This document shows, piece by piece, positions 35,289 through 38,952 of a DNA stretch of 64,000 nucleotides. The notes under the pieces were generated by a model. It saw only the letters and a list, made by a program, of their open reading frames with translations. It had not been told where the DNA came from and searched no databases. The number at the start of each line of letters is the position of its first letter. Positions within the stretch are counted from its first letter, which is position 1. The stretch is taken from NCBI GenBank assembly GCA_023334545.1, contig JAADVB010000005.1, forward strand, positions 112,279 to 176,278. Direction: 5' to 3'. The position numbers were made by a program, and so were the translations under genes. This stretch comes from Salisapilia sapeloensis CBS 127946. Its lineage: Eukaryota; Protista; Oomycota.

Positions 35289-36197
35289 ATGAGACGTTAT
35301 CAGGAGAATAAGTATTGTGGACCAGGAAGTTTCGACGATTTGATCGGAATGGAGGAAGAGGACGAGAGCAAGGCGGCACCTGCGAGTCTCATTGACTCTC
35401 GGAGGCAACAAGCGTCTGTGGAGAACACACAAGAGTCGGCTCGGTACTTGTCTCGTAATCCAGACAGCTCCAATTCGTTTAGTCAAGCCTTTGCTGCACT
35501 TCGACAGACAGAATCGTATCAATCGGAGCCTATAGCTGCTCCAGCCAACGATGCAAACCCTCCATCTTCCTCATCTGGAGCAACGATCTTTGCCAATCGA
35601 GTCCAGACTGGCAATCCAGTCCTTCGCTCCGTGAAAAACGTCCAAGTACAGTTCCGAGACAACCTTATACCAGACTATGTCATGGGTGATGGCAGCCAAA
35701 CGTGCTGTGTGCTCTTCCTCAGCGTCCGTTACCACCTCTTACACACCGACTACCTCCAGCAACGAATCGACCGTATCCTCAAGGAAGACCAGACGACTTA
35801 TCGCACTCGTGTAGTCTTGTGCTTTGTCGATGTGGATGACAACGAAGGACCATTACAAGAAATCAATCGCGTTGCACTGCTCAATCGTTTCACACTGCTC
35901 CTGTCTTGGACATGGCTTGAAGCTGCCAGATATTTAGAGACACTTAAGGTATATGAGCATAAACCAGCAACACTCATCAAGGAGAAAGTCGACAATGAGT
36001 TTCTACCGACCGCGAACGACGTCCTAACTACCGTCCGCTCTGTCAACAAAACGGACGTCGTGACGTTACTTTCGACCTTCAACAATGTCCAGGGCGTCAT
36101 GAATGCATCTATGGAAGAGCTATCGTTATGTCCAGGCATTGGCGTTCGCAAAGTCCAGGACCTACTGCATACATTCCACGAACCATTCAGCAAGTAA
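35289..36197 (+). CDS. ERCC1: DNA excision repair protein ERCC1/Rad10
   Basis: QTGNPVLRSVKNV, PDYVMG, LFLSVRYHLLH, EAARYLETLK, HhH LSLCPGIGVRKV. Confidence 0.95.
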   Translation: MRRYQENKYCGPGSFDDLIGMEEEDESKAAPASLIDSRRQQASVENTQESARYLSRNPDSSNSFSQAFAALRQTESYQSEPIAAPANDANPPSSSSGATIFANRVQTGNPVLRSVKNVQVQFRDNLIPDYVMGDGSQTCCVLFLSVRYHLLHTDYLQQRIDRILKEDQTTYRTRVVLCFVDVDDNEGPLQEINRVALLNRFTLLLSWTWLEAARYLETLKVYEHKPATLIKEKVDNEFLPTANDVLTTVRSVNKTDVVTLLSTFNNVQGVMNASMEELSLCPGIGVRKVQDLLHTFHEPFSK

Positions 36198-36412
36198 AGA
36201 CGCCAAATCAATTTTTATTGCTGATTGTGCCACGCCGAGGCAATAACGCTTCTCGCTCTAACGCTCCTTCTTGGTCCTGCGACAAGCCACACCAGTCAAG
36301 CAATGTACTAACACTGTGGCAATGATTATTCATACGCAAGAGCCAAACAACATATACACATCCATTTCTCTCGTTTGTTCTTGGTTATCACCACAAAAGA
36401 AAGCAAAAGTCC

Positions 36413-37774
36413 TTACACGTTGGGCGTAGGTAGATCAGCGTCCAATTCAGCCTTGAAACCTGCGTCTTCCACTGCTTGCACCAGACTCTCCGGTGTCGCT
36501 TGTCCGGCCGCATACGCACAGCCGTCTTCAAAGTCGACGTACGCTCGCGTGACGCCAGGTGTGCTCTTCAGTGCATTCTCCACTGTCGTTCCGCAGTTGG
36601 CCATGCACATCATGCCTTCCACATGCAGACGGACGGTCGAAGGATCATGGAAGCGCCATGCACCGCGTTCTTTTGACACGTCCTTGTCGAGACTCTTGAA
36701 CAGGACGAAGCCTGCGCCAAAGCCGAGGATCAACGCGATGAAGAGACCAGACTCGTAGATCATGACCACGAGCATGGCAAAGTAGGCAACAGTCATTTGA
36801 ATCATATAGAGCAACGCCAACAGAGCTTTGCTCTGGTACTTGAACGCTTTGTTCGAACGTCGTTTCCGGCGTGCTTCCAATACCTTTTGACGCACTTGTT
36901 CTCGCATACGGACGAGGTATTCGTTGAAAAGGGCGATGAGGAAGCATCCAATGAAACCAAATACGTATTTGAGTTGGGAATCGAGGACCCAAGACTGGAA
37001 GAAGAGCATGACACAACTGCCATTGATCGTCGACTGGAAGCCATTGAACATGACGGAGCCAGCACCGGAGCAAAAGTCACTGTCAGTAGATTCCGTCGTC
37101 GTTGCTGCAGACGTGTCCTCCTTCGAATTGTCCTCCGTCGTAGACTCGGAGGTCTCTGGTTCAAATTGGAATTCAGACGCTTGCGTACTCAGTTTTGTAA
37201 TCTCTTCGGCATCCTTACACGGAGATCCTTCACATATAACTTCATCCACCAAGTATCGAGGTTCTTTTACGACATTGCTCAAGTACTTATCACGCGATTT
37301 ATCGGATCCAAAGTAGATCTTCTGACCTTTTTTCAGACAAATGGAAGAGTATTTGTCTTCCGATATGGGTTCACCTGACACGGGGCATTTGATCCCTTCG
37401 GAACATTTGCCACAACCGTCTTCACAGTCGTATTCTTCCGATCCTTTGTTCACGATAAACTCGGCCATGTTGGCAGCTACGTACGACGTGTCGGTCGATT
37501 TATGGTCATAGTCCGCGAAAGATCGAGGGGCCATGCCACAAGTGTAGATGCGTTGACCGTGGTCCATTTGCACATAGTTTTCGTTGTCATAGCCGGAACT
37601 CATGGTGTTCATGCCACATGCTGGACACCGATACTCGTCGCTCGGGGAAGTGGACCCCATGTCCATATCCATATCCATACTCATATCCATATCCATTTGC
37701 ATAACATGTATGCCGTGCATACCATGGGCCACGACGGACCCAGCGAATAACGCAGCGAGCACCAACGACCTCAT
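36413..37774 (-). CDS. Ctr-family copper transporter with signal peptide, His/Met-rich tract, two YHS/TRASH-like Cys modules and C-terminal HMA domain
   Basis: MxxxM (AMLVVMIY) and GxxxG (GFGAG) in TM2/TM3; pre-TM1 Met in SVMFNGF; HMA LHVEGMMCMANCGTTVENAL...VEDAGF. Confidence 0.9.
   Translation of the reverse strand: MRSLVLAALFAGSVVAHGMHGIHVMQMDMDMSMDMDMDMGSTSPSDEYRCPACGMNTMSSGYDNENYVQMDHGQRIYTCGMAPRSFADYDHKSTDTSYVAANMAEFIVNKGSEEYDCEDGCGKCSEGIKCPVSGEPISEDKYSSICLKKGQKIYFGSDKSRDKYLSNVVKEPRYLVDEVICEGSPCKDAEEITKLSTQASEFQFEPETSESTTEDNSKEDTSAATTTESTDSDFCSGAGSVMFNGFQSTINGSCVMLFFQSWVLDSQLKYVFGFIGCFLIALFNEYLVRMREQVRQKVLEARRKRRSNKAFKYQSKALLALLYMIQMTVAYFAMLVVMIYESGLFIALILGFGAGFVLFKSLDKDVSKERGAWRFHDPSTVRLHVEGMMCMANCGTTVENALKSTPGVTRAYVDFEDGCAYAAGQATPESLVQAVEDAGFKAELDADLPTPNV
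37658..37696 (-). repeat. Imperfect (ATGGAT)n coding microsatellite encoding MDMDMSMDMDMDM
   Basis: Direct reading: atggatatggatatgagtatggatatggatatggacatg on the minus strand. Confidence 0.9.
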
Positions 37775-37986
37775 CCCTACAAGGCAGATCAAGAAATGAC
37801 AGTTCCAAATCTCCATTAGCATCTGCCATCCGAGAAACGGCTATATGACCAAAAAAATACTTTTTATCTAATACAAGAGACTTGATAAAAAGTAGATATT
37901 TAAATGGATCCTGGGTTGTATGGTTGAATTGGAATGTTGACTGGGAATTATACACGATGTCACTATCATTTCTTCTCCGTCGCGAG
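37775..37986. promoter_or_regulatory. Bidirectional promoter between the two Ctr genes
   Basis: TCATTTCTT Inr-like motif on each strand (37791-37799 minus; 37966-37974 plus) and a central 11-bp perfect inverted repeat TACTTTTTATC-N15-GATAAAAAGTA (37858-37894). Confidence 0.65.
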
Positions 37987-38952
37987 ATGGCGGTCTTCCA
38001 TTCGAAATACTTATTTCTACTTGTCGCATGCTTCCTCCTTCTCGTCAATGGAGATGACGTTATTAAGAAAGCGACTTGTCCGATATGTGAGATGGACGTG
38101 AAGCCATACCTGAATGCATCTATCGTGGGCCACCAGCACGTCTACGCCTGTGAGATGGCGGGCCACTTGGACGGCTTGCAGAACAAACCAGAGGCCTATC
38201 TCGGTACTGTCGAGAAAATGAACCCTGCCGACGATGTCGTGTACAAGGATGCAAAGGAGATGGAATGCCCTGTTTGTGGCAAAGGCTTTGACGAGCTCCA
38301 GTACGCTGTGCATTGGAAACCGCTTGGCAATCAAAAGATCTACACTTGCTCCGAAGGACATGCTCACAAAGTCCTCGCAGATCCGGCTGCCTACGTAGCT
38401 GCGAGTGACGCTGGTGAAGGCTTCTGTAACGCTGGATCCAAGGACGCACCCAGAGGATCTGTCATGTTTAATGGTTTCCAGTTTGCTGTCGGCGACAGTG
38501 TCACGTGTGCTCTCCTCCTCTTTCAGCCATGGATCCTATCATCGACAGTCAAGTATGTTTTTGGCATCCTCGGGGTCGTCTTCCTTGCTTCCTGTATCGA
38601 AGGCACAGGATACCTTCGAGATGTTACTCAGCGCCATTTCTACCGAAAGTATAGTCGTATCACGACCTTTGCAGACTACACCGAGATGGTGTCACCTGTC
38701 GAAGACGGATCTGTTTTGAAAGAAATGCAGGTTCGCGTCGTCCAGCAACTACCGCTGTGGTGCAAACTGGTACTAGCGGCACTATACATGGTCAATCTAA
38801 CGATTGCATACTGGCTCATGCTTGTCATTATGACATACGAAGCGGCATTATTCATGGCAGTCATCGTCGGCCTCGGCCTCGGATTCTTCGTCTTTAAAGA
38901 CACGGATGGAGAGAAGATGAGTGGGAACATCGACCCTTGCTGCTCTACATAG
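37987..38952 (+). CDS. Ctr-family copper transporter paralog with signal peptide, two YHS/TRASH-like modules and C-terminal CC motif
   Basis: SVMFNGFQ, LMLVIMTY (MxxxM), GLGLG (GxxxG), terminal DPCCST*; ectodomain CPICEM..VYACE and CPVCG..KIYTCSEGH..DPAAY. Confidence 0.9.
   Translation: MAVFHSKYLFLLVACFLLLVNGDDVIKKATCPICEMDVKPYLNASIVGHQHVYACEMAGHLDGLQNKPEAYLGTVEKMNPADDVVYKDAKEMECPVCGKGFDELQYAVHWKPLGNQKIYTCSEGHAHKVLADPAAYVAASDAGEGFCNAGSKDAPRGSVMFNGFQFAVGDSVTCALLLFQPWILSSTVKYVFGILGVVFLASCIEGTGYLRDVTQRHFYRKYSRITTFADYTEMVSPVEDGSVLKEMQVRVVQQLPLWCKLVLAALYMVNLTIAYWLMLVIMTYEAALFMAVIVGLGLGFFVFKDTDGEKMSGNIDPCCST

Follow-up and report, generated by a model that had tools for sequence, protein, structure and literature searches.

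How copper(I) passes from the pore of a Ctr importer to the chaperones of the cytosol is a matter of debate, with docking of chaperones on the importer's tail, movement via the membrane, and transfer via glutathione as the routes under discussion. A gene of the oomycete Salisapilia sapeloensis CBS 127946 raises this question in a direct form, since it joins a Ctr core and a complete HMA domain in a single reading frame. The gene lies on the minus strand, at positions 36413 to 37774, of a 64,000-nucleotide stretch (GenBank assembly GCA_023334545.1, contig JAADVB010000005.1, forward-strand positions 112,279 to 176,278), the whole of which is called the window here. An ancient covalent union of Ctr with a chaperone-type fold amounts to 'Rosetta-stone' evidence for direct hand-off between proteins, and the Ctr-HMA protein offers a simple system in which Cu(I) hand-off can be probed. 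Its metal loop is of further interest, as the CX3C spacing is a widespread variant, undescribed in the literature searched, of a metal site that ranks among the best studied in biology. Moreover, oomycetes are classical targets of copper fungicides, which gives their copper-uptake machinery practical importance.

The fusion gene and its HMA domain

According to the list of open reading frames and the translation, the minus strand at 36413-37822 is one uninterrupted frame of 469 codons. A preliminary description of this DNA had placed the HMA segment at 36413-36640, and these coordinates are right, because the segment runs from residue 395 of the 469-residue frame to the stop. Translation probably starts at ATG 37774, which leaves a very short 5' leader. 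The ATG at 37822, where the longest frame begins, falls outside every RNA contig, none of which extends past 37777, and the orthologues begin at an equivalent MRSL... without the 16-codon extension. For these reasons, residue numbers refer to the 453-residue protein unless the 469-residue frame is named. The features that carry the main argument are as follows.

36413..37774, minus strand: Ctr-HMA coding sequence, intronless, 453 amino acids (reading frame list, RNA contigs, orthologue starts)
37774-37772 and 36413-36415, minus strand: likely start codon (ATG) and stop codon of the Ctr-HMA gene
37775..37822, minus strand: in-frame 5' extension of 16 codons starting at ATG 37822, probably untranslated (RNA contigs, orthologues)
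36437..36637, minus strand: HMA domain, residues 380-446, beta-alpha-beta-beta-alpha-beta (PF00403, Protein Data Bank matches, AlphaFold2 model, Foldseek)
36590..36616, minus strand: metal loop G387-M-M-C390-M-A-N393-C394-G395, CX3C (loop census, alignment of 53 sequences)

The evidence from RNA consists of contigs of small, transcriptome-like assemblies from four runs of one study. These contigs span 36100 to 37729-37777 without joints, indels or substitutions and include the HMA segment, so the message passes through this segment without an intron. No transcript that ends before the HMA was found among the contigs of the four runs, which as a type of evidence cannot exclude minor shorter isoforms. 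The contigs are read as RNA because they leave the divergent promoter region uncovered, as RNA but not DNA would give: positions 37778-37975 have no coverage, and separate contigs for the neighbouring gene start at 37976-38044.

That a complete HMA domain follows the third transmembrane helix (TM3), as the preliminary description held, was borne out by the single frame, by both Pfam domains and by the predicted fold. After TM3 (...GFGAGFVLFKSL), the unbroken frame crosses a linker of 17 residues and enters VRLHVEGMMCMANCGTTVENALK...AGFKAEL. Pfam scores both parts above their cut-offs, with a Ctr match (PF04145) at E 1.4e-13 and 52.1 bits against 25.3, and an HMA match (PF00403) at E 8e-7 and 29.8 bits against 24.8, the latter covering residues 399-457 of the 469-residue frame. 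In the AlphaFold2 model, the predicted local distance difference test score (pLDDT) over the domain is about 82-97, and DSSP assigns strands at 381-386, 408-414, 419-424 and 441-444 and helices at 393-403 and 428-437. Foldseek superposes the modelled domain on the solved structures 3dxs, 4a48, 2roe and 1osd with a root-mean-square deviation of 0.8-1.1 A over 65-69 columns and a target template-modelling score of 0.83-0.91. A sequence search of the Protein Data Bank with the 75-residue segment matched nothing but HMA domains. Among single domains, Thermus thermophilus TTHA1718 (2roe) ranked first, at E 2.9e-12, and further matches were to ATP7A/B, CopA, PacS, CopZ and MerP. TTHA1718, a CopZ-like protein, shares 48% identity by Foldseek and is equally compact, lacking any additional residues between beta-3 and alpha-2; it differs in being soluble and bacterial and in its loop, GMTCNHC, which is one residue shorter.

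That the loop departs from the usual pattern had been noted from the sequence at the outset. The window loop, GMMCMANCG, has its cysteines four positions apart and thus departs from the canonical GMxCxxC, where they are three apart. In the HMMER alignments shown for solved domains, the target receives a gap of one residue between its cysteines; CX3C is therefore a true insertion relative to CxxC and not a choice of alignment. The residues from the second cysteine onward (C-G-T-T-V-E-N-A-L) align with the first helix of classical HMA domains. In the model, the beta1-alpha1 loop holds Cys390, and helix alpha-1 begins at Asn393, with Cys394 in its first turn. Within an alignment of 53 oomycete sequences, G387, M388, C390, C394 and G395 are invariant and N393 is nearly so, and all 53 have a loop of the form G-M-x-C-x-x-(N/S)-C-G.

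A search of 5.8 billion proteins gave 62 homologues at E <= 1e-42 that share the Ctr and HMA parts, all from oomycetes or from metagenome or Logan contigs. Identity over Ctr and HMA is 48-70%, and nearly all carry both Pfam domains. The genera represented are Phytophthora, Plasmopara, Peronospora, Hyaloperonospora, Bremia, Pythium, Globisporangium, Albugo, Saprolegnia, Achlya, Aphanomyces and Thraustotheca. The Salisapilia protein itself is absent from that collection. A few entries show Ctr alone, and these are either divergent sequences of Saprolegniales or visibly truncated gene models. The weakest of the 62, from Bremia lactucae (P0061), covers only 54% of the query. In one gene model of 1150 residues from Lagenidium giganteum (DAZ98371.1, P0071), Ctr stretches occur several times together with a pair of HMA domains, each of which scores 103 bits and has a GMKCMKNC loop; the model has probably either run together two or three Ctr-HMA genes in tandem or captured a genuine tandem duplication.

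The preliminary description had implied more novelty for the fusion than it has. More than 60 public proteins are annotated with it, for example under the oomycete name 'Copper transport protein' in UniProt and NCBI, and a 2023 preprint mentions that CTRs of a 'protist cluster' bear C-terminal HMA domains (bioRxiv 10.1101/2023.10.19.563170). The P. infestans protein PITG_13718 and the CTRs of that cluster have the same order of ectodomain, Ctr and HMA, at 50-69% identity, and the window gene is a further orthologue. The preprint lists the fusion only; neither the CX3C loop nor the match to ATPase repeats is described there. The literature searched contains no other paper on the Ctr-HMA fusion and none on oomycete Ctr function or on a CX3C loop. 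The architecture is thus already recorded in databases and one preprint, yet uncharacterised, and there appears to be no account in that literature of the loop variant, of its resemblance to ATPase repeats or of the order of repeat types described below.

CX3C repeats in copper ATPases

Which HMA domains are closest to the one in the window was examined with an HMMER search of 1.84 billion representative sequences using the HMA domain alone. This gave 2851 matches, and from the best 150 (P0064-P0212) the repeats were re-extracted and scored with a profile of oomycete Ctr-HMA domains, after which their loops were read. Rescoring by domain was used because most of these 150 are multi-repeat proteins, in which the scores of the repeats add up, so that the rank by E-value is uninformative about the nearest single domain. 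The results of this census, all of which concern the best 150 of the 2851 matches, fall into two classes, with 199 CX3C repeats and 333 CxxC repeats. Median scores against the Ctr-HMA profile are 62.6 bits for the former and 29.6 bits for the latter.

The typical CX3C loop is GMMCQKNCG. Among the 199, the second cysteine is preceded by Asn in 156 and by Ser in 39 and is followed by Gly in 158 and by Ala in 36, which gives a class pattern of GM(M/S/T)C-x-x-(N/S)-C-(G/A) that the window loop fits. The preliminary description had pointed to GMMCxxNC loops in stramenopile Cu-ATPase repeats, and such loops were indeed found in Phytophthora, Chattonella, Hondaea and Platysulcus. Beyond the oomycetes, CX3C repeats occur in the stramenopiles Chattonella subsalsa, Platysulcus tardus, Hondaea fermentalgiana and Chrysoparadoxa australica, as well as in the metamonad Paratrimastix pyriformis and in two-repeat proteins of 140-151 residues from Telonema subtile.

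The two classes are strictly ordered along the protein. Wherever both types occur together, all CX3C repeats are N-terminal to all CxxC repeats (50 of 50 proteins, including 14 of 14 that have the P1B pump motifs DKTGT and CPC); a further 33 proteins or fragments have CX3C only. A 'Copper-transporting ATPase HMA5' of Phytophthora ramorum (P0111) illustrates the arrangement, with GMMCMKNC, GMMCQKNC, GMSCAAC and GMSCAAC in that order. CX3C on the outside and CxxC next to the pump is a pattern that leads to a testable hypothesis of partner matching.

The window domain sides with the outer class. It is 52% identical (61 bits) to repeat 2 and 48% identical (55 bits) to repeat 1 of the P. ramorum protein, both CX3C, as against 31% (28 bits) and 26% (31 bits) for the CxxC repeats 3 and 4. 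In an alignment of 25 sequences, it matches 17 CX3C repeats from eight proteins without any gap, the loop included. The CX3C repeats of stramenopile Cu-ATPases align to it gap-free at 44-55% identity and have an identical loop pattern, GMMC(M/Q)xNCG, whereas classical ATPase repeats (all solved ones compared) have CxxC. When the Protein Data Bank was searched with a profile built from CX3C domains, the five best alignments likewise showed only CxxC domains, each with the same one-residue gap, and TTHA1718 as the best single domain at 70 bits.

A second mark lies before the last strand, where ATPase repeats carry Gly-Phe and Atx1-type chaperones carry Lys in published comparisons. The window sequence there is A-G-F-K-A-E, with G invariant and F nearly invariant in the oomycete orthologues. 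The N-terminal repeats of P1B Cu-ATPases such as ATP7A/B, Ccc2 and plant HMA5/HMA7 have the same fold and the same Gly-Phe. Given this residue pair, the gap-free alignment and identities of 48-52% as against 26-31%, 'ATPase-repeat-like' is a better name for the domain than the initial label 'Atx1-like'. Judged by sequence, the window HMA is a member of the CX3C subclass shared with N-terminal repeats of stramenopile Cu-ATPases. It differs from those repeats in its setting, since it sits on an importer and not an exporter, at the C-terminus and in single copy. Atx1 and ATOX1 differ in another way, being free-standing soluble domains, whereas the window HMA is the C-terminal part of a 453-residue membrane protein.

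Capture of the domain from a Cu-ATPase, as first suggested, is plausible. In a tree of 149 HMA domains (71 columns, IQ-TREE in quick mode), the pump-proximal CxxC repeats separate with a Shimodaira-Hasegawa-like approximate likelihood ratio support of 93, and the Ctr-HMA domains together with the CX3C ATPase repeats form a polytomy, so that neither donor nor direction of capture can be named.

Importer core, topology and possible roles

The remaining features of the protein that bear on its mode of action are listed from the N-terminus onward.

37721..37774, minus strand: signal peptide MRSLVLAALFAGSVVAHG, residues 1-18 (read from sequence; AlphaFold2 helix 2-10, low pLDDT)
37655..37720, minus strand: predicted extracellular His/Met-rich stretch MHGIHVMQMDMDMSMDMDMDM, residues ~19-40 (read from sequence)
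37160..37642, minus strand: Cys-rich folded ectodomain, residues 45-205 (AlphaFold2 pLDDT 89-98; conserved Cys in orthologues)
36689..37075, minus strand: Ctr core with three transmembrane helices, residues 234-362 (PF04145 match; AlphaFold2 helices)
36761..36775, minus strand: MxxxM selectivity motif in TM2, M334-L-V-V-M338 (M334, L335 and M338 invariant, 53 sequences)
36710..36724, minus strand: GxxxG packing motif in TM3, G351-F-G-A-G355 (G351 invariant, G353 and G355 nearly so, 53 sequences)
36638..36688, minus strand: predicted cytosolic TM3-HMA linker, 17 residues, with a (E)RGxWRF(T)DPS motif (conservation in 53 sequences; AlphaFold2)

Ctr proteins have an established topology with the N-terminus outside and the C-terminus inside. 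The same arrangement, with the HMA facing the cytosol, is inferred here, since a signal peptide, an ectodomain, three helices (267-304, 309-339 and 342-359 in the model) and a basic first loop fit that topology. The hydrophobic N-terminus is kept in the orthologues, and the loop between TM1 and TM2, RMREQVRQKVLEARRKRRSNK, is strongly basic, which suggests that it is cytosolic. In the linker, W373 is nearly invariant and R374 invariant across the 53 sequences, and the model has short helices at 364-368 and 373-376. No further conserved Cys/His motif was seen in the tail, linker included.

In yeast and humans, the job of receiving copper from the pore is done by the Ctr1 tail together with free Atx1, ATOX1 and CCS. 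In our reading, the product of the window gene is a Cu(I) importer of the Ctr family, presumably a trimer in the plasma membrane, and we consider it moderately probable that its tethered HMA is a built-in first Cu(I) acceptor at the pore exit. This role, put forward in the preliminary description alongside a copper sensor that gates the pore, is rated the most likely because the HMA replaces the Cys/His tail and because its loop matches the repeats on the exporters of the same lineage. A full HMA domain would stand in for the usual short cytosolic Cys/His tail, about 20 residues below TM3, and on its short conserved linker it would sit beneath the pore of the trimer. Cu(I) leaving the pore would be caught by Cys390 and Cys394 and might then be passed on, by ligand exchange between HMA domains, to a soluble chaperone or to the matching CX3C repeats of a Cu-ATPase.

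Several lines of evidence are consistent with such an acceptor. The adjoining Ctr paralogue keeps a CC tail, and the Ctr-HMA tail has no other Cys/His motif. The tails of human Ctr1 (HCH) and yeast Ctr1 (Cys-rich) occupy the same place after TM3 in the cytosol and have presumably the same Cu(I)-receiving task. Unlike those short, unstructured tails, the one in the window is a folded HMA of 65 residues, and importer and chaperone-type fold are covalently joined. The cytosolic metal-binding domain of Ctr1 interacts directly with the chaperone Ccs (PMC6647829), and the preprint gives CTR-HMA fusions the same reading, where small HMA proteins are also proposed to receive copper directly from CTR (bioRxiv 10.1101/2023.10.19.563170).

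Other observations count against a built-in acceptor. On P1B-ATPases, the role of HMA domains is largely one of regulation, a point in favour of a sensor or gate. The AlphaFold2 model is a monomer with a predicted template-modelling score of 0.46 and is uninformative on placement of the HMA under a trimer. The CX3C loop is absent from the five best-matching solved structures, for which alignments were shown. Finally, a word-indexed search with the 78-residue HMA, covering proteins of 43-136 residues only, turned up no small stand-alone CX3C HMA protein, a weak negative.

The chief competitor is a copper sensor or autoinhibitory gate, in which the HMA would bind Cu(I) only when cytosolic copper rises and then dock on the exit or reshape the trimer to stop import. 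We regard this role as possible but doubtful, and it is compatible with service as an acceptor. The short linker with its conserved WRF/DPS motif suggests a fixed docking geometry, and the domain shares its class with the distal ATPase repeats, which in ATP7A/B are regulatory. A neighbouring paralogue without an HMA could provide unregulated uptake, and gating of this kind would have parallels in the copper-dependent down-regulation of yeast Ctr1 via its C-terminus and in the regulatory N-terminal HMA repeats of Cu-ATPases. Nevertheless, the sequence does not separate sensing from relay and gives no sign of contact between HMA and pore, and strict conservation of the loop is equally to be expected of a relay.

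An extension of the acceptor reading to the whole lineage seems unlikely to us. It supposes that stramenopiles and certain other protists have a separate Cu(I) relay made up of CX3C domains, running preferentially from the CX3C domain of the importer to the distal CX3C repeats of the ATPase. Transfer could then take place at contact sites or via CX3C carriers such as the two-domain Telonema proteins of 140-150 residues. The classical Atx1 route would be left to the proximal CxxC repeats, and the extra loop residue would set affinity or a partner code.

We judge a local copper buffer or sink to be quite improbable. Here, the three HMA domains of a trimer would hold Cu(I) at the exit until glutathione or other small ligands took over, with no specific partner. 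HMA domains bind Cu(I) tightly, and the failure of a dedicated small CX3C partner to turn up, weak as that negative is, would fit. However, one site per subunit gives a very small capacity, and a loop held in common with ATPase repeats suggests partner matching.

It is very unlikely that the CX3C domain is no Cu(I) site at all and instead binds another metal, acts as a redox dithiol/disulfide, or mediates protein interaction like the HMA decoys of plants. Its spacing does depart from canonical CxxC, but the domain always occurs on Cu(I)-specific machinery (Ctr with MxxxM; ATPases with CPC and DKTGT), and the GM before the first cysteine and both cysteines are invariant, unlike those of degenerate decoy HMAs. 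The notion that separate genes for a Ctr and a small HMA chaperone merely appear joined through annotation or assembly found no support and is rejected as next to impossible, given a single frame without stop or frame change, the same junction in 62 homologues from independent assemblies, and transcript contigs of four runs that are continuous across it.

Ectodomain, gene neighbourhood and occurrence elsewhere

The predicted extracellular part of the protein includes the MHGIHVMQMDMDMSMDMDMDM stretch, in the place where the Mets motifs of Ctr ectodomains usually sit. The folded ectodomain that follows has the conserved elements CPxCxM, CGM, CxxxCxxC and DPVSG...GQKIYFxS, and a Ser/Thr/Glu-rich linker of low model confidence connects it to the Ctr core. 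Residues 45-205 match no Pfam family even at E up to 10, and for this reason an assignment to YHS or TRASH was dropped. The module also occurs in stand-alone oomycete proteins of 250-300 residues (P0225-P0240), one of which bears the JGI name 'YHS domain-containing protein', and an AlphaFold DB cluster, A0A058ZFN4, aligns with ectodomain and Ctr but lacks an HMA. The preprint ties the module to Chlamydomonas Cre05.g236039, a CRR1 target, and, with an Albugo candida CTR as its example, notes an N-terminal domain that lacks annotation and is found stand-alone elsewhere (bioRxiv 10.1101/2023.10.19.563170).

Accessory copper-binding modules on a Ctr core are a principle also seen in Chlamydomonas CTRA-CTR and fungal CTR-BIM1. 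The CTRA module is N-terminal to CTR and has a proposed role in copper acquisition before transport (bioRxiv 10.1101/2023.10.19.563170). BIM1 is a C-terminal extension for copper acquisition, whereas the window HMA would lie on the cytosolic, or delivery, side.

Two neighbouring genes deserve mention.

37987..38952, plus strand: head-to-head Ctr paralogue with a related ectodomain module, no HMA and a classical ...DPCCST tail (PF04145, E 5.2e-20)
35289-36197, plus strand: convergent ERCC1/Rad10 gene (PF03834, E 1.3e-35)

The two Ctr genes (37987-38952, plus; 36413-37774, minus) are about 210 bp apart. The paralogue shares 33% identity with the Ctr-HMA protein over the Ctr core and has one related ectodomain module. 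An HMA-tailed and a CC-tailed Ctr side by side provide a natural contrast within one locus. The convergent Rad10 gene is separated from the Ctr-HMA gene by a stop-to-stop gap of 215 bp (36198-36412), across which the RNA contigs are unbroken, so the 3' ends of the two genes probably overlap or abut. A six-frame scan of the 64-kb window with an oomycete HMA profile found no other HMA genes.

The pair and its neighbours LysM, Rad10 and TPS are syntenic with P. infestans PITG_13717/13718. The neighbourhood of PITG_13718 is the same as in the window (LysM, Ctr, Ctr-HMA, Rad10), and the full P. infestans order is a mirror image: LysM, Ctr (316 residues; pair PITG_13717/13718), Ctr-HMA PITG_13718, Rad10, Nramp and TPS. 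One metagenome contig (L001) has the same head-to-head pair of Ctr and Ctr-HMA. On this comparison of gene orders and sequences, the neighbourhood is old.

By sequence, word-indexed searches for Ctr-HMA beyond the oomycetes gave oomycete-like fusions only, and a metagenome scan gave two loci that were uninformative. Comparison of structures reached further. Foldseek against AlphaFold DB clusters aligned both Ctr and HMA of the model to A0A7S4QLB2 (883 residues), R1CZ96 (664 residues) and R1G1B4 (222 residues). In the ESM Atlas there are two Ctr+HMA clusters, one of oomycetes (81 members) and one in which Haptophyta is the commonest phylum (76 members; Ctr in 100%, HMA in 86%). Haptophyte and other fusions are thus indicated by these AlphaFold DB and ESM Atlas clusters alone. 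Another ESM Atlas entry, at rank 40, comprises 107 hypothetical proteins of Nucleocytoviricota, about 170 residues long, that resemble the Ctr part (language-model score 0.64); as a weak lead, giant viruses may carry Ctr-like genes.

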